From NCBI RefSeq assembly GCF_000002075.1, contig NW_004797502.1, positions 64,998 through 128,997 of the forward strand: DNA of 64,000 nucleotides, given 5' to 3'. Positions 40,520 through 64,000 of this stretch are shown one piece after another. The position numbers were made by a program, and so were the translations under genes. A model generated the notes under the pieces. That model was not told the origin of the DNA and made no database searches. It saw only the letters and a program-made list of their open reading frames with translations. Origin of the DNA: Aplysia californica (taxonomy: Eukaryota). How positions within the stretch are numbered: position 1 is the stretch's first letter; each line of letters opens with the position of its first letter.

Positions 40520-40619
40520 NNNNNNNNNNNNNNNNNNNNNNNNNNNNNNNNNNNNNNNNNNNNNNNNNNNNNNNNNNNNNNNNNNNNNNNNNNNNNNNNN
40601 NNNNNNNNNNNNNNNNNNN

Positions 40620-43600
40620 CTAACTGATGAGATGCATTATTTGTAATGTGCAAATACCCTGCTCCCAGGCCCAAAAAACAGATGACTAACCAGCAAAAAG
40701 GAAAAAAAGAAGATAGTTGACTTTGTAGAGACGTGCAGTCGAAATAACGTTATGCAATCAAAACCATGTAAAAACCAGTGGACAAAAGTGAACTTCATAA
40801 AATATAAACAGCTATAACTTCCCTCCTAATTCACCTAGAGCAATCATTTTGGTATCAAATTAAAGCTTCTTTTCAGCATAAGAAGCTTAAATAGTTTAAA
40901 TCTTTGTGTGATCATTGTGGAAAATAATATGAGTCAGCAAGTGTGATGAAGAGTGAAAAGAAAAAGGCTCATATGTGAAGCATCGGATTTTCATTATAAA
41001 CCTATACTGTAACCAGCACTTACAGTTGACAGCGCGTACATCCACTTCCCAAATAAATTCCAGGGCTAGAGAAGAATCACTGCTTTCTCCTCTTCTTTGC
41101 CGGTTGTTTTTTCGGGCGTACAATGGCAGGGGGGGTGTTGGGCTCCTCCGGGACGGTAGCTGGGGGATTGTCTGGTGTAGCGACAACTGGCTTGGGGCAC
41201 ACTATGTCCTTGAACTCCTCTTGCACGAAAGGCCTTATCTCCTGATACAAATAGTTCTGCCTCTTGTTGTCCAGCCCAGGCAAAGAAATAACATTGGGCA
41301 TGCCCTCTAGTGGCACTCGTGTCTTCACAATATTTAGAGTCACTTCAGGGGAGCTAGAAAACTTCTTCACTACAAGTCCGTCCTGTGAAAAATGAAAATG
41401 CTGATTAGCCTTAATGTCTTTTACTTTTCGAAAGTACTGACCGAGAAACTCAGTCCACTTAAAAAAGGAGACAGAGGCTGTGTTGGGGTCAGGCCCAATA
41501 ACATGCGCTAAGTTGGAAGTTGAGCTGCTCTCCACCACAGCGGCAATACATTGCATGGAGTCAACTTTAGTCCTCCGCAGCCGCTTCTTAAAAAGACCAA
41601 AGCACCAGTCTGGGCTAAACTTGGTGTGGCCAGTTATCAAGAAACTCATTTTAATGCTACGGTGACGGCCAGTCATGACACGCCACAGTAGGTAGTTCAT
41701 CATAGCGCTGTTTTTGTTTTGTCCCGAACAATTGTCCGCATGAATGTGGAGATCCTGTTCACCAAGTCCATAGTTGCTAAGGAAGTGGTGAAGCAGGGAA
41801 ATCACACAATCAGCACCTTTGCCGGGCGAACACGCTTCGTCTATCAAGTAGTTTATTTGTTTGGACAGAGCTTCACAGTGGATCCCGAAAAGCCCACACT
41901 TCCTGGGGGTCTTGAAGTAAATGGGCCCTGGCTGAAGTGGGTTGGACGGATACTGCACTTGCTGCGCAAAATCGAAACTGTAATGAACAACACCGTCATA
42001 GGAGCATGGGGGATTAACGCCGAAATCTGCTATATCCTCAGGTAGAGCCTGTTTAGCGGTATCGCAGACAAAGCGGAAATATGACCGCTCAGAAGTGACG
42101 ATGAAGAGATGCTGTTCTATGTCCTTTATAACAGCAGTCTTTGTCTCCACAGACTCGTTCCGCACACGAGTAAGTTTCGCAGCATCCTGCTGACACACCC
42201 AGCACAGGTCAGTAGCTGGAGGCATAGTTCTTATGAATGGCAGCAAAGCAGCCCAAATCCGCCGAAAGCTTCTGTAGCTCACAACACGACTTTCCGGCAC
42301 TGAAGATAGGGTTTCAGAATACTGATCGAAGACACTCTTTTTTGAACAGTTTGTGGGCAGCAGCTTTACATCCGACACCCAGTTGTGTGGAGTACGCCCC
42401 GGCAGCATGATTGCGTGGTCTTCGGCATAATTGACAATGAAGTCCACAACATTCCGTGTGTCCTTGAAAGACAAGGAGTTCGAAGGCAGCTTCTTGAGGT
42501 TTCCATGTTGGCGTGGGGAGATACCATGTTCTTTGTAGTGCACAATGAGTGCGGTTAGTTTTTCCCGGCTGATGGCATGGATGAAGGTAAACGTGTCCCG
42601 ACAGATTCGTTGCCCGTGGTGAAAATAATCCGTGCGGGAAGCCTTCCTCTCGGTCTGGCTTTTCTGCTTCGGCCTGATAGTAAATGCCGACAGATGAATG
42701 CCACAGCTGATCTTGGCAAGGACGACCATGTCCAGCTCCGCCCTTTCAAGCGACATGAAGTGGCACCGCAGCTCCTGCAGCTCCTCGTCCTGAAACATGG
42801 TATGGCACGGCTTACCATTATTCAAGGCACACGCACAAGGGGGACGCTTTGAAGAATTTTTCTTTGCACATGTCGGAGCAGTATCAGAACCAGCCAAGGG
42901 GAGCACAGCTCGGCCAATATCAGTCACAACAGAGAAATCAGACTCCAACTCTTCATGTGTGTCAACTGTGGAAAGATATTATATATGATTCATTAAGTAC
43001 ATGTTTTGGGTTGGGTTTTTTTAAACAAGCAGTCGTCACTCTAACAGAGACTCACTTTTTGTTGAGTCATGTTACGGTAGACCACACTATTCAGCATGTT
43101 TAAATGATTTCTCTCCCCACATCATATTGATCTGAGATGAGCATGAGGGCCTAATTCATAGTCCACCTTTGTATTTAATGAAAACTGTAACCATACATAC
43201 ACATTTTTTGTGATCATAAAACAGTATTACTCTGTGTCCATTCTCGTTCTAGCCTGAAAGCTGCACAAGACACTGAAAAGTAATTAGTCTTTGGTCTTCT
43301 TATAATAATATATATATATATATATATAATAATTATAATCTGCGTCTGTGGTGTAGCAGTAAAGCATTTCGCTGTCGCATGCAGAAAATGTGAGTTTGAT
43401 GCTCGCGTGGGGCGAGTTTTATTATAAATCGAGTATTCGTCTTTCTGCTGGCACGTTGTATCCCTCTCAACCCGGGTGGGCCGTGCTGCCTCCTGAATGA
43501 TTTTAGTGTCAAGAGACGTAAAACTAGAACAATTTACAATTTGTATAGATCTAGACCTATATTGTTGATCAATACACAGGAGTAGTCCTCACTGAAACCT

Positions 43601-44950
43601 AAATCTAGATCTAGATCTACACAAGCAGTCCTCACCGAAACAGCCTAAATCTAGATCTAGATTAGATAGACTGACTGCAGTTCCTAGATCTAGAATCTAG
43701 ACCTAGAATTTAAATCTTGAACCAGACTTAGATCTAGATCTAGATCTATGTTTTAAAAACAGTTTTGTAGTGGTTAGAACAAAGAGGGAGAGGTTAGATC
43801 TAGATATCTAGATCTAAATCTAGAATTCTAGACATGGTACAAAGGGTAGATCTAGATCTAGATCTAGATCTAGGGATTACGGTAAGGAGAAAGGACAAAC
43901 TAAAATGTAGACAAATTCGTCTAGAATCTGTTTCTCTTTATCACTTTTCATCACATCACAACCTTTGCAGGCGGTTGGGTTGGTGGTTGTTTGTGTCCTT
44001 GTTCGGTTGTTTTGTGTGTGTATAGATCAAGATTCTAGATATAGATCAAGACAGACAACACAAACGGTCATCAGCTGTTCAGCCGCAATGTTTACATCCG
44101 TAGGTAATGTCATTATTCACTTTATAACAAATACTAGCAAATCTAATTGTAACATTAGATACTAACCTGCATCAGAAGACTCTGTAGAATCTGAATAAAG
44201 AATCAGCGTCACTTCTTGAGCCGAAATAATCATCAAGAAAATCCTGAATGGAGTCGTTACCAACATTGTCAACAACGGTCCGCGAACAGCTGTTCAGTAG
44301 CTTGGCGATTTCCTCGCTTGACGTCGCCATGATCACTCGTCTCGACTTGTAGTGGTCGACGGAATATCTTGAATTTCTTTTCAAAACAATGCCAATGAAG
44401 TCCAAACAATAAAATGTCGATAGGGAACAGATTCAGCTGTATGCTCGAAGCGAAAATGACGAACTGCGTGACTTGTGAGGCTGTAGCTTCCCTCGCGCAA
44501 GTAGGACAAAGAAAACGGAAGACTGAATTTTGTACCGTGCTCGCTGATTGGATGCGCACTAAATACCCGTATATATTACTTCTGCGCACTCTTCAGTGTT
44601 GGAAAGTAGAGAAAACAAGCTTTAAAACCATACCAAATATAGGGGGTCTATTTTTAGACGGAAACCTTCCACAGCCGGCTGAAATTTGTCAATTTTTCGT
44701 TCTTCAAAGGCAATTTTCGATGATTTTTCCGATTGCGAGCGTCATAGGGTACCTTAGATATTGTCTTCAAAAACAGATTTTCCAACTGTTTTAGGCATTA
44801 GCATTACAATTTTTAGTTAGAAAAATGGATAAATAAAAAGATTTGGCTATAATCTCAAATTCGATAAAAAAAATCAATATTTTGTGTTTATGGAGCTGTA
44901 GCTAGGCTTGGGGATTTGCGTCTTCCGCCTGGTTTTCCCAGGCCACCACA
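40620..44950 (-). mobile_element. Sola-like DNA transposon copy B (near complete)
   Basis: Ends in GCCTGGTTTTCCCAGGCCACCACA (44927-44950), the inverse of 35859-35882 at 23/24 positions. Contains the transposase gene. Confidence 0.85.
41077..42965 (-). CDS. Sola1-like DDD transposase, main exon (open, 623 aa ORF)
   Basis: SFDFAQQV..P..QPGPIYFKTPRK, HADNCSGQNKN, GHTKFSPDWCFG (putative D/D/D triad), DLCWVC and a basic C-terminal NLS. Acceptor ttccacag at 42965; upstream exon 44330-44167 is frameshifted. Confidence 0.8.
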
Positions 44951-45329
44951 TATATGTCCCTAAAATATTGGAACCACTGTACTACAGTGACAGGACTGAC
45001 TCCTACAAAATCGCTTGTAACACAGAGTGGTGTCTTGTAGGCCCAAAAATATAACAACTGCACAAGGACTTTCAAAGAAAGATTGGAGTTTACCCAGTAA
45101 GAGTCTCTCCTCAATGAAATCACAACACTTTTATGACTGGGGCAACGAAAAACGTTGTCCTCACCTCGACCAGATTTGACAAGGGTCATCAAACGCCCGC
45201 AAGTGACGCAATTGGGGAGGTTAGATCTTAAAACATGGTTTTGAAGAAAAGTTATAGCATTATCATTTGACTGTCCAATTTCAAAAAGTACATTAATGGA
45301 TGGCTGTCTAGCAGCAGCCATGGGACGCA
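44951..45329 (-). pseudogene. Merlin/IS1595(ISXO2)-like transposase N-terminal fragment
   Basis: AITFLQ..L..CVTCGRLM..FRCPSH..SLRRDSYWVNSNLSL..LLYFW..VSPVTVVQWFQYFRDI, a zinc ribbon plus HTH typical of Merlin. Cut by the Sola TIR. Confidence 0.8.
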
Positions 45330-45429
45330 NNNNNNNNNNNNNNNNNNNNNNNNNNNNNNNNNNNNNNNNNNNNNNNNNNNNNNNNNNNNNNNNNNNNNNN
45401 NNNNNNNNNNNNNNNNNNNNNNNNNNNNN

Positions 45430-47050
45430 ATATATATATATAATAATTATAATCTGCGTCTGTGGTGTAGCAGTAAAGCATTTCGCTGTCGCATGCAGAA
45501 AATGTGAGTTTGATGCTCGCGTGGGGCGAGTTTTATTATAAATCGAGTATTCGTCTTTCTGCTGGCACGTTGTATCCCTCTCAACCCGGGTGGGCCGTGC
45601 TGCCTCCTGAATGATTTTAGTGTCAAGAGACGTAAAACTAGAACAATTTACAATTTGTATAGATCTAGACCTATATTGTTGATCAATACACAGGAGTAGT
45701 CCTCACTGAAACCTAAATCTAGATCTAGATCTACACAAGCAGTCCTCACCGAAACAGCCTAAATCTAGATCTAGATTAGATAGACTGACTGCAGTTCCTA
45801 GATCTAGAATCTAGACCTAGAATTTAAATCTTGAACCAGACTTAGATCTAGATCTAGATCTATGTTTTAAAAACAGTTTTGTAGTGGTTAGAACAAAGAG
45901 GGAGAGGTTAGATCTAGAATCTAGATCTAAATCTAGAATTCTAGACATAGTACAAAGGGTAGATCTAGATTTCTAGATCTAGATCTAGGGATTACGGTAA
46001 GGAGAAATGACAAACTAAAATGTAGACAAATTCGTCTAGAATCTGTTTCTCTTTATCACTTTTCATCACATCACAACCTTTGCAGGCGGTTGGGTTGGTG
46101 GTTGTTTGTGTCCTTGTTCGGTTGTTTTGTGTGTGTATAGATCTAGATCAAGACAGACGACAACACAAACGGTCATCAGCTGTTCAGCAGCAATGTTTAC
46201 ATCCGTAGGTAATGTCATTATTCACTTTATAACAAATATACTAGCAAATCTAATTGTAACATTAGATACTAACCTGCATCAGAAGACTCTGTAGAATCTG
46301 AATCAAATCAGCCTCGCTTCTTGAGCCGAAATAATCAAGAAAATCCTGAATGGAGTCGTTACCAACATTGTCAACAACGGTCCGCGAACAGCTGTTCAGT
46401 AGCTTGGCGATTTCCTCGCTTGACGTCGCCATGATCACTCGTCTCGACTTGTAGTGGTCGACGGAATATCTTGAATTTCTTTTCAAAACAATGCCAATGA
46501 AGTCCAAACAATAAAATTTCGACAGGGAACAGATTCAGCTGTATGCTCGAAGCGAAAATGACGAACTGCGTGACTTGTGAGGCTGTAGCTTCCCTCGCGC
46601 AAGTAGGACAAAGAAAACGGAAGACTGAATTTTGTACCGTGCTCGCTGATTGGATGCGCACTAAATACCCGAATATATTACTTCTGCGCACTCTTCAGTG
46701 TTGGAAAGTAGAGAAAACAAGCTTTAAAACCATACCAAATATAGGGGGTCTATTTTTAGACGGAAACCTTCCACAGCCGGCTGAAATTTGTCAATTTTTC
46801 ATTCTTCAAAGGCAATTTTCGATGATTTTTCCGATTGCGAGCGTCATAGGGTACCTTAGATATTGGCTTCAAAAACAGATTTTCCAACTGTTTTAGGCAT
46901 TATCATTACAATTTTTAGTTAGAAAAATGGATAAATAAAAAGATTTGGCCATAATCTCAAATTCGATAAAAAATCAATATTTTGTGTTTATGGAGCTGTA
47001 GCTAGCCTTGGGGATTTGCGTCTTCCGCCTGGTTTTCCCAGGCCACCACA
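45430..47050 (-). mobile_element. Sola-like transposon copy C (5' end; direct repeat of ~43317-44950)
   Basis: Near-identical to the 5' region of copy B, including the TIR at 47027-47050 and exon 1 (46432-46274). Confidence 0.85.
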
Positions 47051-47079
47051 CAAATGTCTGCGTTCCACAAGGCACTCAC

Positions 47080-50000
47080 ATCCTGAGGGCGGAGCGCTGA
47101 GCCAGCAGCTGAAGTCTCCACCATCACCTCACACTGCCATGGACCCGAACCCCCATCAATCTCATCACACTTGACGCTGACAGAAGTGCTCCGCCGACGA
47201 GGTACTGAGCCCGACGGAACTTGATTCTCATCTGAAGCAAATGACAAGAATTCCAATATATTAATAATTTAGACCTGCATGTGAGCCTCAACCAGATTGT
47301 CTGAAAATTTTGCGCAACCCCCCCCCCCCCCCCCCCCCAAGGAGCTTTTGTGGGTGTCATAAGTCATAAGGAAGGACTTTCGAGTAACGAGTGACCACCC
47401 CAAAAAACACAACAAAGAAGAGACCTAACCCTACCCCTACGTCTACCCCAAAAAAGAACCTGCAACGAGCCTTATGTGAAAAGGCCAGCAAAAGTTTAAA
47501 AAAAAATTAAATTAAAAATTAAAAAACCACACTCCAAAACAAACAAGGCTTACAAGGAGCATAATATAATGGCCTACATCTAGATCTACATATATATTGC
47601 TAGATCTATAATAATAGGGTTTGATACAATAAGTAACACAATAGAATTGGAATATGAATCCTCCATATATAGATCTAGAGCTAGTAAACTAAATAAATCT
47701 AGATCTAGATCTAGATCTAGTAGAACAAGTGAATAGGATCTAGGAATAGGCCTTGGCCTTGAACTAGAAATCCGCATCCGATTCCGAACAGAGGGGCTCA
47801 GCTGAGTCTAGATTCTAAATAAATAAATAATTCACGCACCTGATGAAATGCCTTTTACCAACATTAATATTACAGCACAGCCTATGATAGGGTTGGACAA
47901 AATAGAATTGGAATATGAATCCTCCATTGAGGTCTATAATGATCTCTATATAAATCTAGATCTAGATGTCTAGATCTAGATGTCTAGATCTAGATCTAGA
48001 TGTCTAGATCTAGATCTAGATGTCTAGATCTAGATCTAGATTCTATTTATCTAGAATCTAAATCTAAGTGAGTTGGACTGGAATTAATCCACACGATCTG
48101 AACAATTGAATTTGTCAACAAAACGAAATTCAAAATGGCCGGTCGAGCACGAAACAAAGTAGATAATTTAGGTCGTCGTCCTTTTTCGTATTCGCATTTC
48201 TACTCAGGTTCCGACAATTATGTCGGAAACGCCGACGTCGGCAGTCGGTGGTCGGCACGAACACGAAAGTGCCGACAAAGCCGACGGGAGAAAAGGGGGA
48301 CGCTGGCAGTCGGCCAGGCCTCGCACTTCGCACATTGACTGATACAGGTGGGCCTAGCGATAGCATCGGCCGCCTCGCGGGTCGGGTCGCGATTGTCGGA
48401 TTTCAGACGATTGTCGGCAAACATGCAGGTATAATAATTGCATTGATACAGTGCATATCCATGCTCTACAGCATGCTCTATGAGCTTTACAGCTTCTAAT
48501 TATACTACCCCAGCAAACCCTATAACACTCAGAAACGTCAGCTTCACAGGAATAATACTGTAGATTAAGCCCTCAAACACTTACAAACCGACAAGATCTT
48601 TCAATGTCTATAGCCAGGAACCCATTTCCAATAGGGTGAAGTGGAAAACGTGTATAGTGCCTTTCAAAAAGACATTGCATCAGGCCTCTGACAGGAGTCG
48701 AACACCTTCACCATACGGTTGAGAGTCTGAAAGCCTTACCACTAGACTACCGATGGCACAGTAACTTCAGTAATAACACAGAAACAGAACAAGATAAAGG
48801 ATCACGATGTTTAGTTTTAACATATACAAAACACAAAATAAAAAAGCACTACACCCACTTAGAACTCATAAATAGATGACAAACCTGATTTTCTCTTTCT
48901 GTCTTTCCGTTTGTTCTCGTCCCCATCACTTGAGCTATCAGTTGAGGTCACAACCTATGGGAAAAAAGGTATAACACTTTTATCTTAAAGGTGTCTCTTA
49001 GATAAGGAACCTGCACAAAAATCATCAGATTGTATTTTTAAAAACCCGCAAATAACGCAGCCATACGGTTGTTTTAGTTTTAGCAAGAGTTTTACAGAAC
49101 TTGCAACACAATTTGATCATAGAAGTGCTGAAGATTAGAAGTGTAACTGGTAACATATGAAAAAAAAAAAGGAGAGATAAAGATGACACACATTTGATAG
49201 GAAAGAAGAAGCAAACTTCACCACAGCATCCCCCAACCACCCATCATACAGTGGAAGACATCACCTTTCCCAAAAGTAATGACCAAAAACATTCCACTTC
49301 AAATTAAGCAAATTGTTTTCCCTTTGTAGCATCAAGCTCCATCAGACAGAGTCACACCAATTCTAAAAAAGAGCACTTGGTCCTCACTAAGAACATGGGC
49401 TGAAAAGATTACCATTTCCAGCAGGAAGATTAACAAAATAAATATCCCCACTATGAATCAAGCCTTAAACTTCCAAGTGAAGTTAGTTTACCAACAGCAC
49501 CACAGCAGGTGGTATAAACACCAACAATTTCCAGAACTGTCCAATAAAAAAGACCTCCCTTAAACCTACTTACCTGTGGTCCCACCCTGGTCATAGGTCG
49601 CTGACAAGAGCTCTCCTCTCGCACACAAAGCTGTACCAGTTTTTCCAGCTGTCCACATTCCACCCCTCATATACCCCAATCTCCTTGTATTCCCTTCCAC
49701 CTCTAAGCACAAGCACAATGCTTTCTTTGGTTAGCCTCTCTTTCTTTTGCCTATAATTTATTACACAATTAACTGACCTGATCACCTTCCTTTGTGTGTA
49801 AGTGAGCGTCCAGCTCCGACTGCTTCACAACAACAGATGGGCTGGTGGCTCCGGTGAGAACAGTGGTCGATGATGAGACAGACTGGGGTGATGATGCTGA
49901 TTTTTGCGACGATGCTTGAGATCCTGACGAAGGCAAAGAGCTTGACAGACTTCCCGATGACTCTGAAGGGAAAAGAAAAAGAAATTCAATAAAACATCAA

Positions 50001-53000
50001 AGAGATTTACCTATCAGCAGCAGAATACTCAAGCCTTCTGTCAAAAAAGATGTATTATTTTATAGACAGAAACAAAGATTATTCCTGTAAGTGTTTTTAA
50101 GTGAGTGAACAAGTGAGTGAGTGTGTGTGTGTGTGGGTGCGCGCGTGTGTGTGTATGTGGGTATGTGTNNNNNNNNNNNNNNNNNNNNNNNNNNNNNNNN
50201 NNNNNNNNNNNNNNNNNNNNNNNNNNNNNNNNNNNNNNNNNNNNNNNNNNNNNNNNNNNNNNNNNNNNNNNNNNNNNNNNNNNNNNNNNNNNNNNNNNNN
50301 NNNNNNNNNNNNNNNNNNNNNNNNNNNNNNNNNNNNNNNNNNNNNNNNNNNNNNNNNNNNNNNNNNNNNNNNNNNNNNNNNNNNNNNNNNNNNNNNNNNN
50401 NNNNNNNNNNNNNNGTGCATGTGCAGGTATATATTTATCAAAAGCACTTAATCCCTCTTACACATTGCCACATTACCAAAAACAAACACCTAGGTCCAAT
50501 ATAACCTGGACAAATTCAAAACAATACCAGTAGCAAAAACTACATCACTAACTCTCTCACTTCTCAGTTGATAACTAAAATCAATTCAAATAATCTTACG
50601 AGAAAAAATTAACTAAAATAAAGCAATAGGTGTGACAACTGTAAAGGTGTTTTTTTTTTAAGCAAGAAAAGAAAAAAGCAAGTTTTCACATTAAAATAAT
50701 GGTTATTCATTTTCCACTTCATTACACTAACCTGGAGTGCATGAAACCTGCTCTGTTGGAATGTTTGAAGCTCCACTAGTGGGCAGCTAGAGAACAAAAG
50801 AATAAAATTAGTGGGCCGGAAACATTTACAAAATCACAGGTGAACAAACAAAGCTCATAAATTACATTCATACATGTACAAAAAGAACTTCATATTAGAT
50901 CCTTTGAGATGGACAGGAACCATTGTGACAAGGCAGCAAGGAAACTGTCAAATTTTGACAGGAAACAGAATAAAAAAATGACAGTAGTAAAAAGGAGTAA
51001 ATCACATCAGACAGCCAGCCCACCACCAATAATGTGCTCTATGGAAGGAAATCTGTATAAATTGTCTAATACAAAACAAGGACAGTCACAAAGTCATCAG
51101 TGACATCTCTAAAACAACTGTGCTACACTGAAGCAAGCATAGAATACTTCTTATCTGGCTGTCAATCAAAATCAATGATGAATGTGACTGTGATTGAATT
51201 CAGACGAGAATGTTTATTGGCCACAAGGCCTGCTTCGGATCTGCAATATCTTCCGTATTTTAGAACTTAAAAGTCTGATTGTGATGACCTGCAATGTTTG
51301 ATGTTGTGAGAGTTTATCATAGCATTAACACTTTGCCCCCATAGGACGCTGATTGATGTGTGATATAGCAACAAAAATAAAATAGCAATGATCTCCTTTT
51401 TGACATGCGCACTTGTTTATGAATGGTTTGTGTGGCCCTTAAGGTCGAAAATTAGTATTTTTCCAACAATGGGAGTAATTTTTCTTTAAATGTCTAGTAC
51501 ACCTGGCATGAGTACTGCTTTACATTTATACCATATTGAAAATTCAGGTGATGAATGAGCTAGATCTATTGTATTATTGTTTTCAATCTTGGTGAAAATG
51601 AGATCATCACATATAATTTTCTCATTATGCTGAAAATTTTATATAATTGGGTATTTTTTGCATCCTGGTCCATGGGGACGAAGGTTGTGAGCTTTTCACA
51701 TTTCATGGAAGCAAAGGGTTAAAAAAGTCTCACCTGGGACAGAACTGAGCTACATCCAGAAGCCGAAGTTGATGATAAAGAAGAGGACAAAGAGGTGTTG
51801 GCCGATGCTGGGAGCCCGGCAGTGCTGAACAAAGCCGTGCCAGAAGAAGAAGCGTCTGATGCTGGAACAGTCACAGCCCTCGTCACCAATTGTCTCCGAA
51901 TACGGATACATGAATCCGGCTCCAGGGAGCAGTTGCGGTGAAAAAGACCTCTGCAGAGAACATGGTGGGAATTTGGGGGGTTTTTTAAAGTTTTTATTAA
52001 GAGTTTTGCGGCACCTTCAAGACAATTAGGTCATATAAGTGCTGAAGATGAGAGATTAGAGACAAGAGAGTAGCATACAAAGAAAAAAAAGGAGAGAGAT
52101 TTATAAGGATGATAGTTTGATAGAAAAGAAGGTGCAAACCACACCAGAGTGCCCGTCACCCACTTGAAGTATAGATTGAGCTATAATAATTGTACCACTC
52201 TGCATAAACAATCAAAGTTTTTTGTCATCAACATTAATGTTTCCACGATTTCATGTAAAAAAAACAAAAAAACTTTTATCAAAGAACAGGTCAAGGAGGA
52301 TGGAGGGGGTGGCAGGGGGAGGGGAAAGAGACAAAAAAATATAACACAGTAAGCTGGCCATTCCATGAAAAGCAGTACCACAGTAACAAACGTAATACAG
52401 AAATGAGGGACCTGCTGAAAAAAAAATGTAAGAAGTGGCAGAGCCATTCTTTCTTTTTTGGGGAGGGGGGGGGGGGGGTAGAGTTGCCTTTCAAAAATTC
52501 TTTATTTTTGGGGGGTAGAGGATGGTTGCCTTTAAAAAAAAAGAATAAAGAAAGAGACAATGGCGCTATCAGCACTAAAAATATTTTTCACTATATTTAC
52601 CATCATATTCATAAAAATGGCAACACATCTTCTGACAAAATCTTTAAACAAACAACTCACAAGGCTTCCATGACAGAAAACTGCTGCACGCGCAGGGCCT
52701 CCCCCAGCAGATCCGCGCCACAGTAGACCATGTGTGGGTTGTTTTCATCATAGAGTTTCCTCTCCTGAATGTACTCCTGGACCAGTCCAATGATCTGACC
52801 ATACACGATAATAATAATAATAATATAACAATGATGATGGTGATAATAATAATAACAATTACAACAATAACAACAGTAATAACAGTAACAACAACAACCA
52901 CAATCATAATAATAATGATAATAATAATGGATAATTTCTTTAGCACCCACTCCAATAAAATACAGCTCTACGCACTTCCGAATACCTTCATCTTGACGCA

Positions 53001-53456
53001 AAACTTAGTCTTAGTTTTAGTAGAGGTTTTACAGCACTTGCAACACAATACAGTCATAAAAGTGCTGAACATAAGATTGTTTGTTTTAGTAGAGGTTTTT
53101 CGGCGCTCGCAACTGCGTAAGGTCATATGAGCACCAGAAGATTAGAGGTGTTACAAGCAAGTACCGTAACAAACATAAAAAAGAAGGAGGGTAGATAAGG
53201 ATGATAGGTGTTTCATAGGAAAGAAGGAGCAGACCACACCAGAGCACCCGCCAACCACCCTCCCGAACATAAGAGGTGTTACAAGAGAGTAACAAACACA
53301 AAAAAGGAGGAGAGATCAGGACGGCAGATGTTTGGTAGGAAAGAAGGAGCAATCCACACCACAGCACCCGCCTACTACCCACAACAATGAGATGATGATG
53401 ATGATAATAATAACAACTACAACAATTACAACAGTAATAACAACAACCACAAAAAC

Positions 53457-53487
<31 letters not shown>

Positions 53488-55610
53488 GATAATTTCTTTA
53501 GCACCCACTCCGGTAAAATACAGCTCTATGCACTTCAGAATACCTTCATCTTGACGCAAAACTAAAAGTGAAGGAACATGATGCATACATGCTATCTCTA
53601 TATTATATCAGCTTTAACACTTAAGCAGACACAGCAAAATCTATGATAGGATGCACATCACATTATGAACATAAGAATGCCAGGAATAAGAAGGACTACA
53701 TGTATTATAAATGTAGGAAAACAATTTAAGCAAGAGACAAAAGACATTTATTATGACAGACTAAACCAAGTGTTCCATTCATCTACACTAGACATGACTT
53801 TGTTTAGCACAAAAGTAAAGACAGGCTTATACACTGTAATGCAGGGACCAGTCGCTAGACATTTTGGCATGTTCACGGACACACCTAGTAGTACTGAGGA
53901 CCCTTTTTCAACACTGTCGCAAATCATTTGACGCAAATATTCAAGCCAATCAGTTTGTAATTTAACAACTAGTTTCACCTTTCTAACAAGATATAGGGTA
54001 AACTATTTTCAAGGAGTAGTCACAGTCAAAGAGCGAGTAATACACACTAAACATTACAACTGAACTAAAAACTAAACAAACAAATAAAAGCCATGATTTT
54101 TTAAGTGTATGCTTTCTTTGCTGCATTGTTTTGCTCCTTTTTATTATTGTAATTTAAATTATTTCAAAGTATGAGGATCGGTGGATCAGTCCTCACTTCC
54201 TACCTCTTTCAAAGTGTATGTTTCTCCAATGCCCCCTGCGAGCTGTAACACTTTCAGTAAGGCAGGACGAGGTCGCAACTGAAGATAAAATTTATTATCT
54301 TTTTTATGAAAGAGAAGTACGCCAACACATGAACAGTCAATCTATGTTGAAAAAAGGAAGAAAGATAAGCTGAAAATCAGAGAAAAGAAACTATGTAAGA
54401 CTTACCAGTGGTGCCCTTCAACCACCCAACCCCCCCCCTAAAAAAACCCAAATAATTTATCATGAAACCACTAATGCGGACTTAAGAGTACTCTCCTTCC
54501 AGTCACACATCAGGTCCTATTAAAATAAAAAAGCGGTGAACACCACAAATATCTCTAAAGTGAAAGGTTTCTTTCGGCACATTTGATTTTTACAGCAAGT
54601 AACCAGGGTATACAACTTGAAAGTTGACATTGTTCAGAATTATACAAAAGTATAGTTGAAAACGTTCAAGACAGCCACATTTTGTCAAAGAAAAAAATAC
54701 AAGAGGCAAGTTGTAAGTAGAAGAGACAGAAATTGATGTACAGAAAAGTGAGAGGCCATCCCAGGATGGAGAAAAGTGAAAGGTGTTTGTTCGTGGCCTA
54801 TACCCTGATGATGGTGAGAAAGGCAATGATGATGATGAATTGGGAAGTGGTCATTTTTGTGCAGGTGATTGTGTCCTTGACAGGCGGCCGCTAGAACAGC
54901 TTCGGCTGTGCTTATGACAATCCTTTAAAAAAAAAAACCAAAGAAAAAACACTATAAAATAAAGACAGGGGAACATCATGCTGAAGTGGTACAGAGACCA
55001 AAAACTTTTATTCTCGTTGAATTTTCCTCGAACAGCAAACTCTGGCCAGTCTGATTTTCATCCCCATATTGTTTTAATAAGTGTTAGTAAAAGTTTTCAG
55101 CACTAGCAACAAACATAATTAGGTCAAATAAGTGACAAATATTAGAAGTGTTACAAGGGAGTAACTTACAAAGAAAAGAAGTTGGGAGAGATAAGGACAT
55201 TGAAAGTTGAATACGAAAGAAGGCTCAAATCACATCAGTGCGTTCACCAACCCCCCAACTTCAAACAAATCAGACAAGAAGTTTTACCTGCTTTTGATAT
55301 ATCTGTCCTCTCTTTTACCTCCCATAACCCTTCAAGTGCTCAAGATCGAAACACAGCGTCATTTATCACTTACCATGGGCACACGAACAGTAGTGGTCTT
55401 CTCTTCCAAAACATACTGTGTAGTGGGAGTGGTGGTAGGGACTGTGTCGCTGCTGCCACAAGAAGACGGCAATGATGACGTGTGGGCGGCTGCCACAGTT
55501 ACCGTGGTAGAAAGAGGTGACTGAACCTGGATCCGGGACACAGATGGGGAACCTCCGTCGATAAGAGGCTGGGCAGAGCCCTCTGGTATTGGTGCTCTGC
55601 CCGTCTCCAT
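47080..55610 (-). CDS. MDM2: MDM2/MDM4-family p53 regulator, 3'-incomplete (SWIB/p53-binding domain, Ser-rich linker, NLS)
   Basis: Exons 55610-55374, 54278-54204, 52794-52661, 51950-51734, 50786-50732, 49962-49778, 48954-48885, 47231-47080; GT-AG introns, phase-consistent (375 codons). LRPRPALLKVLQLAGGIGETYTLKE|IIGLVQEYIQERKLYDENNPHMVYCGADLLGEALRVQQFSV aligns to the MDM2 p53-binding domain. NLS KRKDRKRKS; RRRSTSVS..DE..GPW resembles the post-NLS/Trp motif. The last two exons are less certain. Confidence 0.85.
47560..48423. mobile_element. Probable DNA transposon end within an MDM2 intron
   Basis: Dense ccgac/gtcgg repeats ending in gattgtcggcaaACA (TGT terminus on the minus strand), preceded by tctaga arrays. 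Confidence 0.4.
48430..48760 (-). mobile_element. tRNA-derived SINE family B (diverged)
   Basis: Reverse-complement similarity to 31273-31565 and 11880-12221. Confidence 0.7.
52806..53565. repeat. Local duplication of an (AAT/AAC)n unit plus ~80 bp, flanking SINE-C fragments
   Basis: atggataatttctttagcacccactcc...ttcatcttgacgcaaaact occurs at ~52927-53005 and again at ~53485-53562. Confidence 0.85.
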
Positions 55611-57939
55611 CTGCCTCTTTCTTTTCAACAGGTTACACTATTCAAGAAATAACAATGTAACTGAAAAATTTGATGAAAATGTTAAGGATCCTTCTAATCA
55701 GGGTGGAGTTGCAAATTGTTTCTATCCTCATTTGTAGTGCAACAACCCTTGTACAAAACATATATAAGCTTGTACATAAATTTTTCAATTCTATTTCGTC
55801 TTGTAATAAAATATAGATCTACCATACTTCTTGATTCTTTACACATAAGGACAATTTGAACATTTAATTAAATTTTTCATTCCTAAGCGAAGAAAAATTA
55901 GGCGTTAAAAATTAAAATAATAAAATTATATTATTACTCCTAAGGCACTGTACCATCATTTTTCTTAAATATTACTTACAAATTCATAAATACTATACAC
56001 ACGTAATTGACTCTATACACTTGACAAGAGTAAAAGAACGAGTAACGGCAGAAAAACCCCGAGGTTTTGTTTGTTTTTTAGTAAGAGTTTTACGGCATTT
56101 GCTGAATTTGCAACACAATAAGGCCATAAGTGCCGAAGATTAGAGGTGTTACAAAGAGAGTTGTGTGTAGGAAGAAGAGAGGTATTAACCCATTACTATT
56201 AAAGAAAAGGAGCATAAATGACAACCCAGACCATTTTTACAATAAAATCAAAGAAAAGTTAAAACAAACCTACTTTACCCATTAAAATGCAAACGCAGTT
56301 TGGGAATCTGAACCCATCTAAACTAAAACTAGCATGCATAGTAGAGGCTCAACAAAGTTGAAAGAATAGCGTTTACTAAAAATGAATGGAAGTTCAACGA
56401 TAAAGGCTTTTAAGAAATCCTTGTCATTTTGTCAGTTTCATAAAATGTAACATAAATTGCACAGAGTGACAGCCAGTAGACAAAACAAACAATACAATGG
56501 AAACCCAAGTTCGGTTCCAGAACACAGAACCAGCAGCTAAACATATAAACTTTAAAAAATCCATTTGTTAGCAAAATTAAATGTCTAGCATAAAATTTAA
56601 AAAGGACTTACAATTAATCTGACATTCTCTGTCATGACTATTTAAAATTCAACAGCACAACTGAAACAACTGAGTGATGAATTGTAGCACAGCGATCACA
56701 ACAACTGCTCGTTAAGTCTGTTCGAAGAACAGAAACCACAAAGAAAAAATTTGGAGGGAAAGAAGCAGATTCTCTTGCATTGCATTTCATAAGTTCTAAA
56801 ATTAGAAGCGGATGTGCATACCGGAAACACATGGGAGTGGTATCTGCCTTGTTCTCCCATGTTATTAATCCCCTTGACGCCTCTGTGGAGGTAACCACCA
56901 CATCCACAACCCCCCTCTCTTTTTCACTTTGACCTCCTAACACAAAGAAGGATGCCAGGCATGCCACCAGTTGTGAACACCAAAGACCAGTGACCGCCAT
57001 AAACTCATAAAGGTTATAAGTCACATTGAACCATTTAACTTGAACACGGCTCTGCTCAAGCAAAAAATGAGCCCATAGTCCATACAATAAAATACAAAAA
57101 GTTGTGAAGAGAATTGAGTGTGGTGAACTTAACAAATATCATATGTTCAAAATGTAGGCCTACTGTTTCTAATTTTTTTTTAGGAACAAATTGTATTTTT
57201 TTTCTGAAGAAAGAGTCTTGACCTCCGAAACTAGTAACGGTAAATTCATGGCCATCCCATTTATATAATATAACTTTTCCAGGTTTTAAGCATACATTTC
57301 AAAATTATTCTTTTACTTTCCCTCCCGTCTCACACCTAGCGGTCCATTCTCTACAATATATTGACGCGTTGAACACGAATATCGACTTCATTTCCATGGC
57401 AAATGAATAGTTTTAAAAACAAGTCAGACATGAAGTTATAGGACCTCGCTTTGATATGATCTGCCCTCTTTTACCTCCCATATAGCCCTTCAAGTGCTCA
57501 AGATCGAAACACAGCGTCACTTATCACATACCATGGGCACACGAATACTTTTAAAAACTTTTTTTTTAAAGTATTTAAATTTATTTATAAATATGGTTTT
57601 TGATCGAGCTATTATCACACTATATCACAAGCTTAGTGACTAAACCTACCTAATCCTAATATCATATTGCGTTGTAATTTCCGCACTTTGGAGCTATGGG
57701 GGGGTCAGTGGGATTACAGCTTGTTGATGTATTGCAGTTAAGTTGAAATTTTCTTGAAAATTGTTGGTTTGTGACAATTTTAGTGCCTATAGGCTAATGC
57801 GTGATCTGTGCAGCAAAAAATACTGCAGTTTGACCCCCAAAGCAGGGCATGTGAGGGAGTGAAAACAAATATTTACCAAAAATTTAAAAAGTAGTAAAGT
57901 TGTTCCCGCATCTGATCCAGACATAATGGAGGTTGCCTT

Positions 57940-58160
57940 GTTAGTGAGACAACTTCCTGGGCCTTCGGCATATATATTGTAGTAGGGTGGCCAGTTCCTT
58001 TCAACGCCCCCTTTACTTCCCCAACTCGAATTCAGGAAGGCCTAACCATTACTGCTGGATGGGCAGGAGGGGGCGAAAAAAAATCTGTGTCCGAACAGAG
58101 GCTCGAACCCGGACTTTCCGCTTTGGAAATGAGCGCACCAACCGCTCCGCTACCGCACCC
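57940..58160 (-). mobile_element. tRNA-derived SINE head and body (another family)
   Basis: Minus strand gggtgcggtagcggagcggttgg...gggttcgagcc provides A and B boxes. It does not form a tRNA acceptor stem. Confidence 0.55.
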
Positions 58161-58283
58161 TAAAAAAAAATCTAGTATGGTACATCAAGTAATTAAAAAA
58201 TAATAGCCTATTGAATCGGGAATGACAAAGGATTTTTTTTTCCCATTAAAAGCAAGGCAAATGAACAATCTTTTTTTTCCCCG

Positions 58284-58460
58284 GAGTTTTACAGCTCTCG
58301 CAACTGCATAAGGTCATATAAGAGCGCGCGGGACACACCAAACATTTTGAATTGGCAGGAAATTTTGAATTTTGCCTGGGTGGCGGCGCGGCCGAAGCCT
58401 ACCTACTCTTATCATTTTAGACCAAGGAATCTTTAACGAGCGCAACTTGCACACAGGCCC
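58284..58460 (-). mobile_element. SINE family A 3' fragment
   Basis: Matches 38028-38200. Confidence 0.7.
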
Positions 58461-58942
58461 TAATCACAGAAGACAGAAGACGATAGCCTATAGATTCTAA
58501 ATAGAAGAAGTCTAGATATATGGTATTTTTTATAGAAAAGCCCTCCCGTTTCGCGTCACATCTACTAGATCTACTTGAAGTCAGCTCCTTCACCACTTTA
58601 GTGCCGTCGGATATACGAATAAGGTCAGTTTTTTTAGTTGGCTAAGTTTTAGGCTTTTTTTTTTTATAATGCATGCTTTTATAGTCATTAGGGAGGGTTT
58701 CAGGGGGTGTCCCCCTGACAAGCGAGAACGTAATAGCTGTGTGTGTAGTAGGGCGGGCAGGCAGGGTCTCCCCCCTGAAATAATGTGCCGTAACATCTAA
58801 CAATTTGCGACGTTTTTCAATGCCAATTTCGCGTTCGGGGCCCTAAAAAGCTACAAAATAATACCATTTCTGAGATGGGAGGCTATAAATTTACCATCTA
58901 GATATCTAGATCTAGATCTCTAGACTAGATTTCTATTCTTAC

Positions 58943-59100
58943 CGCAGAATGTTGTTGGTGATTGGGCGGGTTCAACTCGAACACCTCATCAGCTCACGAG
59001 AAGAAAGTCAAGAAAGTAAAGTAGGTCTTGGCTATACGTAAAAAGGCGCTGCTGGGCTGGGCCTCCCGATGGAAATTTTCAGCAGAAGAATTGCAGCATG
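58943..59100 (-). other. Probable non-coding first exon of the MDM2-family gene
   Basis: GC-richer segment ending in a strong donor (ctgcg|GTAAGA at 58943/58942); contains only short uORFs. The 5' boundary is approximate. Confidence 0.55.
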
Positions 59101-59231
59101 GTCTAAATATAAATACAGTCTACATAAATGAGCGCAAAATATTAACAAGCCACGTGATCTTTTGTGTTGAACCCCTGGCTCCAACCAAATGAAAGCAGAT
59201 CAGTTCCTAAACAAAAGTAAAACAGAAAGCT

Positions 59232-59251
59232 GGACGTGTCCGGACTTGTTT
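59232..59251. promoter_or_regulatory. Candidate p53-family response element in the MDM2/LAS1L divergent promoter
   Basis: GGACGTGTCC-GGACTTGTTT: two abutting decamers, 19/20 match to RRRCWWGYYY x2. Confidence 0.65.
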
Positions 59252-59944
59252 CAACGCAGCAAGGGGAATGCTTGGGAAACGGGAAGTGATCGAGCAGCAT
59301 TGGAGGGAAACCCCTAGTTTTGTTGGTATTTCCTGACCCAATTATAATGTTTCTATCAGTCTATTTATATCTTCAAACAAGCAAGGTTGCGTCCACTGAG
59401 CCTGCTCCAGGCCGAAGTATGTCAAAGAATGAGATTTCAAAATAACAAAAGGGTGAGTATGTAATCACCTTTTTTAAAAATTGTTCACTTGTGGAAGCGG
59501 GTTGTTTATTTAGATCTCATCAAGGGGCTTAGAATCTCACCTAGAATCTAAAATTCGGTTTTGTAAGCCAAGCCAACACACTGTGGCCAAACTTACACCA
59601 TTTCTATACTGTCAAACTGCAGTCTGTCTATGCCCCTAGGCCTTAATTAGACTGGTATTGCCAGTTGCCAGCACGCGTTTTGTTAAAATTATGTAGCCTA
59701 GATAGATCTATTATATTTTTTTTTCTTTGTCTTTTTAGAAAACTGCAGTTCAATTTTAAATTATACTCTGCAATATATAAATATTCATTAACTTGTACTT
59801 TAAATGATACGGGAAAAAAGTGTAGTAGAGTTAAATACGAAGGCCTGGTCGTTGAATTATCAAATACAATTTTTGATCTCTAAAATCTGGCTAGTTTCAT
59901 TTCTTATTCTTTTTTTATAGGACAAAATTGTCAGCAGAATCAAG

Positions 59945-62900
59945 ATGGCAGCTCCCTTGATGTCGTTGCCTTCTTCTGGCAGTATCAAGCATGTAGTGCC
60001 GTGGCGATCACGGTATGCAATTACTTTTTTGTTTATTTTGATACAATACAGTCGAACCTGTGTAAGACGGCCACGCATTGTCAAGGAGAAAAGTGGCCGT
60101 ATAAGACAGGTGGCCGTCTTAGGCAGGATTGATTCTCTAGATGGCTGGATTGTACTTTAACTTTAATGTTTACTGGACCACCCATCTCGGTCCGTGAACT
60201 ACGCACGCCTAGCCTAACTACGCATTTATAGATCTAGTATCTAGTTCTCTACGTGCGGACAAAAGGTAGTTCCGCAGGCGACTTCATGCTTAGCGCAAGC
60301 CAGCGGCTAGGCGAGGTGAGCGAGAGGTGGTGGTTGAGGATGGGTAGGCGATTTAACTTTCGTGGACCACCGTGTATCATACCCAACGATAATAAAGAAA
60401 ACATGCAAATGCAAAATATGAGCGGACTATCATGTTTACGTATCAATGTTGTAACAACAGTGGGGGGTTTCAGGGGGTTAGCCCCTCAGGCAACAATAAT
60501 TTTAAAACACACACACAGACACACACATATATAGATAGATATATAGATCTAGATTTAGATCTAGATATTGCCCGTGGGTTGATAAAATAAAAGTGTTGGA
60601 CAAGTGCCAATTTTACAGTCAAATTATATTATTATATCTAATCTAGATCTAGATCTAGATCTAGATTTAAAAAACGCGAGGGGGGGGAAATCCGAAATGG
60701 AAAGTGGCCGTCATGGCAGGTTCGACTGTTCTTATTGTGACTTGCATTTATTATTTATAATAAAACACAAACTTTCGTGACGTTTGAGACCAAATTGCGG
60801 AGACCAAAATAGCCTGTTGAGTCTGCCATAAAAATAAGACAGGGAAGATCTAGAATCTAGATATATATCGAGATCTAGAATCTAGATCTAGATCGAATAT
60901 TATCTAACCTTTTATAAATTTTCTTTTATTCCTGACTTGTTAGAAGCTTTATATTGTCAGAATGAAAACAAAACGCCTCTGTCTTTCTACAGGAAGAGGA
61001 AGAAAACACTCTCAGGAAACTTTTTTTTCTTTTTGCCTGTGGCTATGCGTACGACCCTCCCGTAAATAGGTTGTTCTTTATATGGATTTTATTGACTGAA
61101 GGATTTTTTAACAATTGAAGATTTTTATTATATCAACAATAAATCAATGAAATGATTTCTTCAGCTATCTTTTTTATAGCCAAAGGCATAAAAGATTCTC
61201 AGACGAACATGCTAACATCGAAGCATGCGAAGAACCTACTCTTCCTCTACTCTACTTTGTTGTTACTTAGTTCAACTTGAACTGCTTAAAGTTTAAGGTG
61301 TATGTTGATGAAGCCTCAAGACGTGTTTTGAAAGTTTGTCCGCTTGTAGTGTCCGGTTTGTAAACAGCAATAATATGTGTGTGGCGTACAACAAAGACTA
61401 ACTTATTATGTGAACTGGAGGCCCGTATGCATAGACAGGCGCTCCACATTAGGATAATAATGCGTATGCATAGCTCTGCATGGATACGCATAGTAGCCAC
61501 TTTGTTTCTTTTTTGGCGTATAATTTAATTCATTTGACTCATTTAGTATTTACTGAAGAGGAACAGGGCATAATCTATTATTTTCTCCCATCTTCTCATC
61601 AACTGAGATATCGATCGTTGATAGCTCTTTTTCTTCTTGTTCTTTTTTTTCTATTTTATAGATCTGACTTTATGTTAGTCATAAATTGCAAGATTTTGAA
61701 ATATTTTGATGGGTTTTGTTGGACTAGCCTTCTTGTAGAAATCTACACTTTAAGCTTAATTAATGCATTAATTTTTCTCATGTTTTTACAAACTTGGGGA
61801 TTTGGGGGGGCGGGGGCATGACCTATGACTAAAAAGATCTTAGTTAGGGTGTACTTTGAGGGGGGGAGGGGGGGGGGGGCGGGGGGGGGCGGTGGTGTAT
61901 TTCCCTATAATTTTATAATTTGATGGTGATTTGCAAGTAAATTATTATTTGTTGAGATTCTCTTGAAAACAATGAATTTGTGACGGTTTAAGTGGCCTTA
62001 TCATATGTGTGCCCTGCGGTAAAAAATACAGCAGTTTAGTCCCCTAGTTAAAGCAGTACATGTATGTGGGGAGTAAAGCTAAAAATTTACCTTTTTTCCT
62101 AATTAATAGTAAAATAATACTGGCTTTACAAAATAAATGACTGAAAAATATGTCAAAATATTAAATGGCTTGTTGTCATTCATATATACTATGGCACAGG
62201 ATTAATTGAAATATTTAATGTTTGTTTGGTTCCTTTGTGTATCCTATGCTGCCTAATTGCACTTACTGACACTTGAGAATCCTGATAATCTGCAGCTGTC
62301 ATTTCCTAAGCAATTTTACTGAGCTACGGATCTTTTCCTTTGACTTTGTTGGGCCACAAACATCTTTGTTACTGGGTGACAAAACAGTCTGGTCTTCAAG
62401 GGGGGGAGTCCCCTATGTCTGTTTTGAGCTGGTCAGAAACATTATCGTACAGGCTGTGGAATATCCCAGTGTTATTAAATTACTTATTGTACTTTACCGT
62501 TTTGAAATTTGTTTTGTTCGTGTTTTTAATGCGCATTAGGTTTATGCAACTTCTAAATTTTCTGTACGTGAATCTTTAGAAAATAAAAAGAATTCTTTTC
62601 ATAAGAAAGAATGCTTGGATGAAGGTCTTTAGTATTTTTGTCCTGTTTTGTTTCATGAACTCATTTTAGTTCCTAATTTAAATGTAGTTGAATATGGAAA
62701 AAGAAGATTTCATTTTTTAAGAATACATCATTAAAAAAATGTTTGGTTATTAGGCAGGAATTCTTAGGCGTCTATGAGAACCTGTTCAATGAGGATGTGT
62801 CTCAACAAAATCAAGCCATCAACAGAATTGCCACTTGGAAGTCAAGGTAGGTCTTATGATTATGAAATTCATATATTTTCTACTGTGTTAGTTAAAATGA

Positions 62901-63655
62901 AAGCAGTGAGGGTTTGTACTTTGTAGTACATCAAAGTACTTTTTTCCAGGTGCAGTGCTATTGTAAGCAGCAACTGATGTTGTCTAGACTTATAAAAAAT
63001 TGCAGCAGATATATTATCATGACTGAGAAAATTGTCCTCTCAGAATATGCCAGTGTGAAACAAGACAGCTTCAATACATTAGCTCTAGCCTGTTTTGCAC
63101 CGAAGCTTTGTTATGCAGTACAAAAGAAGTTGTTGAAAGCAACATTCCATTGGTTTTATATGTATATTACTTGTGAGGCAGCTTGGTAAAATCAGGCGCT
63201 CGTCAAAATAAAGAAATCAGAGAAAGGAGTATTCCTCTAGTTTGGAAATTTTTATCGAATTTTTGTTTTTTGGCTTACACCTTTCATGCCCATTAAAGAA
63301 CTCATTCCGATGTTGATTTTACTGAAAAACTTTGACTAAAGGCATAAAGGATATAAATTTTGTAGTTTCCATGGACACTCAAGCTAAGGACATAACTCAA
63401 CTTAGATTAGACAGCCATTTTTTCGCTTATTTTACTTCTGAAACCAGGTGACCCTCACCTCCTTAGATTGTTTGTATTTGATGATGATAGTCTACTATTT
63501 GTCTTGCTCAGGGCAGGGAACAAGTTGTCTGTGGCTATTGAAAGTTCTGCTCATCTTCTGCAAGTTTGCTTAGACTACAGAACGGCAAAGGCTGAGGGCT
63601 CTCTGCAGGAGAAAGACGCCCAGTTGAGGTCCAGCTGTGGCCTTGCACTGATCAG
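59945..63655 (+). CDS. LAS1L: LAS1-like ribosome biogenesis endonuclease, 5' part (continues beyond the window)
   Basis: Exons 59945-60012, 62754-62846, 63512-63655; GT-AG introns, in phase. Product: KHVVPWRSRQEFLGVYENLF..QNQAINRIATWKSRAGNKLSVAIESSAHLLQV...LRSSCGLALIR, which matches the Las1 N-terminal domain. A 5'-UTR intron lies at 59453-59920. Confidence 0.88.
60049..60728. mobile_element. Tc1/mariner-pogo type MITE (same family as 7544-8356)
   Basis: TA|CAGTCGAACCTG...aagacggcc and ggccgtc...CAGGTTCGACTG. Confidence 0.75.
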
Positions 63656-64000
63656 GTTTCACTACTTTTTTTTTTCTGTGAAATGATGTCCTGGGTATTC
63701 ACATTAATGGTCAAGTACATCTCTTTCGGTACCTATTATATGAATGTAGACTTCTTTTCCTAAGCTCAGCAAATGGTAATGGGATCACTCTTAAGTGTGC
63801 TAGATTTGGACTGACAGCGATGCAAAGAGGCTCGTCTCAGTGCAACAGCAAATGATGAAGTGGGTCAACTTTGCCAATCGATAGACGATAGTGGAGCTCG
63901 GGAGCAATTCTCTTGAAACAGAGAATGGGATTCTATAAGGAATTAATTAATATTTTCTTGGGTAATAAATGTAGAAAAATTTGTTGAAATATATATCTTT

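Follow-up and report, generated by a model that had tools for sequence, protein, structure and literature searches.

In vertebrates, the feedback loop between p53 and MDM2 plays a central part in suppressing tumours. The age of its transcriptional arm is poorly documented, the non-vertebrate evidence that we found consisting of protein-protein interaction and of in vitro binding to putative sites in Trichoplax. A 20-mer, GGACGTGTCCGGACTTGTTT, at positions 59232-59251 on the plus strand of a 64-kb window of Aplysia californica (the window being the whole stretch of DNA that was analysed), raises the question of whether p53 also controls its own inhibitor in a mollusc. An earlier note had described it as a near-perfect p53 response element just upstream of an invertebrate MDM2 gene. 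The analysis reported here indicates that the 20-mer is probably a real p53-family element. That the Aplysia p53-family protein would bind it and induce MDM2, which would constitute the feedback arm, is our main reading, with a probability of roughly 0.65.

The gene on the left-hand side of the 20-mer is encoded on the minus strand and corresponds to a 675-aa protein (P0001) named 'E3 ubiquitin-protein ligase Mdm2 [Aplysia californica]' by NCBI. The protein comprises a SWIB domain at residues 83-143, with a Pfam E-value of 1.9e-4 slightly under the gathering score, and a C-terminal RING domain at residues 620-669 (E 1.1e-11). Compared with p53-binding domains of the PDB, the SWIB exon matches those of human MDM4 (E 1.5e-9) and human MDM2 (E 8e-8). 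The presence of SWIB and RING domains, the NCBI name and the MDM4/MDM2 matches identify the gene as an MDM2-family ortholog, as had been proposed from the sequence. Its transcript is documented by a spliced Logan contig of 1032 nt (run X5, record 9), which aligns with 0 mismatches in three blocks, 54204-54278, 55374-55637 and 58943-59076. The two joints, 55637 to 58943 and 54278 to 55374, both read CT..AC, i.e. GT..AG on the minus strand. The first donor, CTGCG/GTAAG, is thus found at 58943/58942 on the minus strand, and the 5' end of exon 1 reaches at least 59076. The features on the MDM2 side are as follows.

58943..59076, minus strand: MDM2 exon 1, non-coding, defined by the spliced RNA contig, with stops in 3/3 frames.
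55374..55637, minus strand: MDM2 exon 2, in which translation begins (ATG at 55610-55608, METGRAP...), coding for P0001 residues 1-97.
54204..54278, minus strand: MDM2 exon 3, LRPRPALLKVLQLAGGIGETYTLKE, start of the p53-binding SWIB domain.
52661..52794, minus strand: MDM2 exon 4, SWIB core, 100% identical to P0001 residues 105-149.
~51731-51955, 49760-49966, 48877-48957 and 47035-47238, minus strand: later MDM2 exons, P0001 residues 148-392 (coordinates obtained as positions on contig C232 minus 64997).
59108..59115, minus strand: TATA-like box, TATTTATA, which precedes the 5' end of the MDM2 contig by 32-39 bp, its putative function suggested by its position.
59151..59156, no strand assigned: E-box CACGTG, between the TATA-like box and the p53-type site, at about -75 to -80 from the MDM2 start.

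The MDM2 gene is divided over two contigs of the assembly: this one codes for residues 1-392, and C147 (1703-7836) for residues 375-675 with the RING domain, the two parts overlapping at residues 375-392. Within the window we found no exon for the RING or RanBP zinc-finger domains, which are located on C147. The 20-mer precedes the MDM2 contig, whose 5' end is at 59076, by ~156-175 bp, and the first donor of the gene, as fixed by the joint between 55637 and 58943, by 289 bp. The earlier note's estimate of ~290 bp was therefore accurate, and so was its placement of an E-box at ~59151. In two poly(A) raw-read RNA runs (X21 and X22), the depth on these exons is below 1x, and most of the reads placed are repeat matches. 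Rfam and tRNA scans of positions 55800-59500 gave no match.

Other features of the window are mentioned here for completeness. In MDM2 intron 1, segments 58237-58630, 57843-58236 and 56070-56266 are interspersed repeats with a summed RNA-contig depth of up to ~100,000; joints and loose ends connect 58319 to 56135, and these segments look like one abundant transcribed repeat family. A 633-aa open frame is found at 41080-42978 on the minus strand (Pfam DUF7869, E 1e-17), and an ORF at 39612-40619 on the same strand gives the impression of a putative piggyBac-type transposase with a C-terminal cysteine-rich motif. The two frames, which lie downstream of the MDM2 exons, look like insertions derived from transposons. 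Finally, the segments 43217-44800 and 44905-46900 are near-identical tandem blocks with repeated ORFs and an N gap at 45330-45429, which may be a genuine local duplication or may have arisen in the assembly.

Directly to the right of the 20-mer, the plus strand carries LAS1L (LAS1-like), a ribosome-biogenesis gene that is divergent from MDM2 and had escaped the earlier note. The features on this side, together with the 20-mer, are listed below.

59232..59251, no strand assigned: p53-type element, made of the decamers GGACGTGTCC and GGACTTGTTT on the plus strand, abutting.
59227..59453, plus strand: putative non-coding LAS1L exon 1, from an RNA contig at 59227-59390 and a donor AAAGG/GTGAGT at 59453.
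59921..60012, plus strand: LAS1L exon with the start codon, ATG at 59945, MAAPLMSLPSSGSIKHVVPWRSR, covered from 59923 by a contig of 1746 nt (run X4, record 8).
~62754-62846 and ~63513-63656, plus strand: two further LAS1L exons, with Pfam Las1 E-values per exon of 2e-4 and 5e-4.

The first coding exon of LAS1L is 84% identical to the LAS1 first coding exon of three other gastropods, Biomphalaria (locus L003), Physella acuta (L005) and Bulinus truncatus (L006), and the two further exons match Physella and Bulinus LAS1 in tblastn searches with E-values of 1e-9 to 1e-13. The RNA contig at 59227-59390 (run X5, record 14) has 0 mismatches and a depth of 3.6, and it might stem from unspliced RNA or DNA; it begins 5 bp before the 20-mer. 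By depth arithmetic, the contigs of run X5 do not cover positions 59077-59226. This gap between the contig ends fits two divergent start sites ~150 bp apart, and the presence of the divergent LAS1L gene beside MDM2 places the site within a compact bidirectional MDM2/LAS1L promoter. The description 'just upstream of MDM2' thus holds in that the site is 5' of a transcribed exon 1, but the promoter is shared with LAS1L and is not simply that of MDM2. To the right of the site, on the LAS1L side, an ETS-like GGGAAGTGA was read by eye within 59262-59300 on the plus strand, and it may be part of the LAS1L core promoter.

How good a p53 site is the 20-mer? Flanked by AAAGCT on the left and CAACGC on the right, it reads AAACAAGTCC GGACACGTCC in the MDM2 sense. 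It agrees with RRRCWWGYYYRRRCWWGYYY, i.e. two copies of RRRCWWGYYY, at 19/20 positions with a spacer of 0 bp, the sole mismatch being in the first decamer, where a G takes the place of W5 (core CGTG). Both decamers retain C4 and G7. The two abutting decamers, their 19/20 fit and the lack of a spacer had all been read correctly in the earlier note. Most activating p53 elements have 0 bp between their half-sites.

The 20-mer is the only match to the consensus with at most 1 mismatch in the 64-kb window. Dinucleotide shuffles of the window give 0.17 expected matches, with at least one match in 14 of 100 shuffles. In the Aplysia californica assembly (927 Mb, 4332 contigs), there are 26 perfect matches and 1077 with at most 1 mismatch (1.16 per Mb), and the reversed pattern, used as a control in the same genome, yields 34 and 1234, respectively. 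As the counts for the real pattern are below those for the reversed one, p53-type sites are not enriched overall in this genome. From the density of 1.16 per Mb, the probability of finding a site with at most 1 mismatch within 300 bp of a chosen point is ~3.5e-4, and that of finding one anywhere in the ~5 kb from the promoter to the MDM2 ATG is ~6e-3; both figures carry possible hidden multiple testing, since many MDM2 promoters may have been looked at. The promoter stretch 59080-59460 (381 bp) is single-copy in the 927-Mb genome, which rules out a repeat or transposon origin of the 20-mer. Elsewhere in the genome, a perfect 20/20 consensus, GGACATGTTTGGACTTGTTT, is found on contig C245 (319833-319852 of assembly G000), and its second decamer is that of the MDM2 site.

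To go beyond consensus matching, the site was scored with an affinity matrix measured on human p53 (Veprintsev & Fersht 2008, PMC2275157), with which we could reproduce the published predictions. Changes at C4 and G7 carry the largest affinity penalties in this matrix (Table 2 of PMC2275157). With a matrix for human p53, as opposed to the mollusc p63/p73-like protein, the Aplysia site has a penalty of 0.62 and a predicted logKd of -6.99. The corresponding predictions for known elements are the following.

p21 5' site: predicted logKd -7.11, human-p53 matrix.
MDM2_RE1 (mammalian): predicted logKd -6.69, human-p53 matrix.
MDM2_RE2 (mammalian): predicted logKd -6.42, human-p53 matrix.

On the human matrix, the predicted affinity of the Aplysia site thus falls between those of the p21 5' site and MDM2_RE1, in the range of validated elements. 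Scoring with a p53 matrix against the background, which the earlier note had proposed, was carried out on the window and on 224 kb of background sequence. The Aplysia site is the best-scoring 20-mer of the whole window, the runner-up having a penalty of 0.79, and 1 other equally good site is found in the 224 kb; composition alone predicts 0.5-0.7 such sites per Mb.

The site can be compared with the mammalian MDM2 elements themselves. MDM2_RE1 is GGTCAAGTTGGGACACGTCC, made of the decamers GGTCAAGTTG and GGACACGTCC (PMC2275157). The Aplysia site, read in the MDM2 sense, has exactly the same second decamer, including the non-consensus CACG core, and the CAAGT core of the first decamer is also common to both, for 15/20 identical positions overall. 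We regard the identity of the second decamers as a curiosity, and it is no evidence of descent. In mammals as in Aplysia, a p53-type full site is found beside MDM2, but the architectures differ. The p53 elements of vertebrate MDM2 genes are a pair inside intron 1 and drive the internal P2 promoter. In Aplysia, by contrast with this intronic pair, a single element is present 5' of exon 1 in a bidirectional promoter with LAS1L. A further difference is that the function of the mammalian elements is proven, while the Aplysia element is predicted. A search for a vertebrate-like P2 element in Aplysia intron 1 yielded as its best 20-mer one at 55756 that has a penalty of 1.25 and has lost G7, and this candidate was rejected.

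Conservation in related species, whose absence was among the things that the earlier note had named as speaking against its reading, was assessed at the orthologous loci of Biomphalaria, Physella and Bulinus, identified using P0001. The LAS1-MDM2 head-to-head pair, with one short promoter in common, is also present in these three species; it spans 47035-64000 in the window, 1-20872 in L003, 1-19374 in L005 and 1-29797 in L006. Its occurrence in Aplysia (Euopisthobranchia) and in three Hygrophila indicates that the arrangement is conserved between both groups. The loci, of 30-40 kb each, were scanned whole with the human-p53 matrix at a penalty cut-off of 0.85 or less. Very few sites per locus score this well, and one in each species is located just upstream of the LAS1 ATG.

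Biomphalaria, L003:2587: GGACAAGTCAGGACTTGTCG, penalty 0.65, 96 bp to the LAS1 ATG.
Physella, L005:6880: AAACGTGTCTGAACTTGTTT, penalty 0.83, 94 bp to the LAS1 ATG.
Bulinus, L006:9592: ACACAAGTCTGGACTTGCTC, penalty 0.71, 88 bp to the LAS1 ATG.

Equivalent sites therefore exist in three other gastropods, and on the point of conservation the earlier note's reading stands. A 0-bp spacer and the C4 and G7 residues of both decamers are common to the sites of all four species. In alignments anchored at the 20-mer, all species pairs agree at 12-16 of 20 positions within the site; in the flanking 20-bp blocks, agreement is ~5/20, which is the random level, except in the planorbid pair (Biomphalaria/Bulinus). 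Given a background density of matrix sites of 4e-6 to 2e-5 per bp over the 224 kb, the joint chance of such sites in three lineages (Aplysia, planorbids and Physella) is ~1e-8 with 300-bp windows and ~5e-7 with 1-kb windows, Biomphalaria and Bulinus not being mutually independent and hence counted as one lineage. The comparison covers four gastropods, all of them in Heterobranchia.

In the MDM2 sense, ACAAGTCnGGAC is common to the sites of Aplysia, Biomphalaria and Bulinus. The Physella site best resembles that of Aplysia when flipped (16/20), and the asymmetric CGTG/CACG half is reversed in Physella relative to Aplysia and missing in planorbids. For a near-palindrome with such a reversed half in Physella, strict orthology of the sites, base for base, cannot be demonstrated. 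No E-box CACGTG was found closer than 400 bp to any of the orthologous sites (L003, L005 and L006), and the E-box at 59151 was therefore discarded as a conserved partner. Two sacoglossan loci (L007 and L008) contain many N gaps, and LAS1 homology is absent from them within 10 kb. A second Biomphalaria assembly (L004) stops ~1.45 kb before the promoter. It falls short of it because of a ~4-kb insertion and does not contradict conservation; this insertion sets L004:1346-7043 apart from L003:5392-7077 and affects either the long first intron of MDM2 or the region upstream of the gene.

A p53-family element calls for a protein to bind it. The Aplysia genome has one locus for a p53 DNA-binding domain (PF00870, E 5e-34; contig C1545). 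Its main exon is closest to the DNA-binding domain of the Alvinella pompejana p53-family protein (7pc6, E 2.5e-66), the next-closest matches being human p63, p73 and p53. The Aplysia ORFs read 'CVGGPNR', in which 'GGPNR' holds the equivalent of R248, and EVRICACPGRDRK ('VRICACPGRDR'), with the equivalents of R273, A276, C277 and R280 in human p53 numbering. Those DNA-contact residues are described as conserved in invertebrate p53 homologs (PMC8901663). As they are kept, the Aplysia protein is expected to have a p53-like recognition code.

We propose the following mechanism. A tetramer of the single p63/p73-like protein of Aplysia would bind 59232-59251. The site would act from a compact bidirectional promoter, ~156-175 bp upstream of the MDM2 start, with the TATA-like box at about -30, and, towards LAS1L, it would coincide with the 5' end of that divergent gene or lie immediately before it. 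Upon stress, the p53-family protein would be stabilised and would bind the 20-mer, and MDM2 transcription would increase. MDM2, with its SWIB p53-binding domain and its RING E3 ligase domain, would then restrain the p53-family protein, so that its induction would represent the transcriptional arm of a negative feedback loop as in vertebrates. LAS1L might be co-regulated from the 20-mer. That the Aplysia protein binds the site, that it activates transcription from there, that it does so under stress, and that MDM2 responds, as opposed to LAS1L alone, is what we infer from the sequence.

Among the alternatives, the one that survives best accepts a real p53-family element but assigns it to another target, LAS1L, which would be activated, or repressed at its start site, or to both genes equally. 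The element would then link p53 to ribosome biogenesis, and the induction of MDM2 would not be its main purpose. This is in line with the location of the sites 88-96 bp from the LAS1 ATG in the three snails, closer than to any known MDM2 exon, and with the conservation of the head-to-head pairing itself. In Aplysia, the low-depth RNA contig that starts at 59227 makes it possible that the site is part of the core promoter or the 5' UTR of LAS1L. However, the MDM2 start is only ~156 bp away from the site, and the TATA-like box points to MDM2. Furthermore, to our knowledge LAS1L is not recognised as a direct p53 target in vertebrates, unlike MDM2, which is the canonical one. A bidirectional promoter as short as this one is expected to serve both genes, and the alternative then overlaps with our main explanation. 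In mammals, loss of LAS1L triggers nucleolar stress and p53 according to two reports (PMC3279398, PMC8684752), which speaks for LAS1L. All in all, we consider it unlikely that LAS1L is the main target or that both genes are equal targets.

It is improbable that the site serves another factor, be it of the bHLH-PAS/HIF type (ACGTG), of the grainyhead/CP2 type (central CCGG) or an unknown factor of the LAS1L/MDM2 promoter. The Aplysia half GGACGTGTCC does hold RCGTG, the centre of the site is TCCGGA, and ACGTG is also found in Physella. Nevertheless, both ACGTG and CCGG are missing in Biomphalaria, which has CAAG/CTTG cores and a TCAGGA centre, and in Bulinus, whose centre is TCTGGA. What is conserved is the p53 grammar, namely two RRRC..GYYY decamers without a spacer. 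That the 20-mer and its snail counterparts are fortuitous look-alikes of the consensus, devoid of p53 function, is very improbable: there are ~1000 equally good matches in the genome with no enrichment over the reversed-pattern control, 14% of shuffled windows hold one, the earlier note searched for the site after MDM2 had been recognised, and the half-site orientation is inconsistent between Aplysia and Physella, but the probability of a site no farther than 300 bp from a given start is ~3.5e-4, equally strong spacer-less sites recur in the same promoter of three more species amid random flanks, for a joint chance of ~1e-8 to 5e-7, and C4 and G7 are retained in both half-sites in 4/4 species. 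Our preferred reading therefore remains that of a p53-family element that would induce MDM2.

Similar regulation has been considered in other invertebrates. Siau et al. 2016 describe three putative p53 elements, TXRe320/350/540, upstream of the Mdm2 gene of Trichoplax adhaerens (PMC5039725). Tap53 bound these sites in vitro, and human p53 was able to transactivate from TXRe540; Tap53 gave no transactivation in human cells, and the authors call for confirmation in the native organism (PMC5039725). The Trichoplax and Aplysia genes both have p53-like sites a few hundred bp upstream, which for Trichoplax has been argued to reflect an ancient loop, and we make the same case for Aplysia. They differ in that spacers of up to 13 bp were allowed for the Trichoplax sites, going by a figure legend, compared with 0 bp in Aplysia. 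Moreover, the Trichoplax sites have been tested for binding, whereas that of Aplysia is predicted and backed by cross-species conservation.

Another likeness is offered by Corp in Drosophila, a negative regulator of p53 that is induced by p53 (PMC4521751). There, p53 transcriptionally induces its own inhibitor, making up an invertebrate loop that resembles the one proposed for Aplysia. Unlike the Drosophila Corp system, Aplysia retains a true MDM2 ortholog. In molluscs, an MDM homolog of Mytilus interacts with p53 (Muttray 2010, cited in PMC10303687), and the affinity between mollusc TAD and SWIB has been measured as low (PMC10303687). The earlier note held that the evidence from invertebrates mostly concerns protein binding. 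The Mytilus interaction agrees with this view, but the in vitro binding of Tap53 to the Trichoplax Mdm2 sites gives the idea of a transcriptional arm a precedent in an invertebrate (PMC5039725). In the literature on Aplysia Mdm2/p53 and on LAS1L/MDM2 bidirectional promoters, we found neither the element nor the gene pairing. A conservation-supported candidate p53 element at MDM2 in a mollusc thus appears to be new, and its pairing with LAS1L is undescribed in the literature searched.

The 20-mer is probably a functional p53-family element, as predicted from its sequence and conservation, and would represent a new, molluscan instance of the p53-to-MDM2 arm. By this reading, molluscan p53 probably induces its own inhibitor, as its vertebrate counterpart does. 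A strong predicted site kept across long-diverged heterobranch lineages provides a concrete 20-bp target in tractable animals such as Aplysia and Biomphalaria. The promoter shared with LAS1L also suggests a connection of p53 signalling with ribosome biogenesis that can be tested. It is tempting to speculate, if only tentatively, that MDM2 and LAS1L are an anciently conserved gene pair in gastropods and that the shared element makes them respond together. If true, p53 activation would adjust both its own inhibitor and the rRNA-processing factor LAS1L through one site, and the p53-MDM2 loop would have a hard-wired genomic link to nucleolar or ribosome surveillance, older than the vertebrate RPL5/RPL11-MDM2 route.
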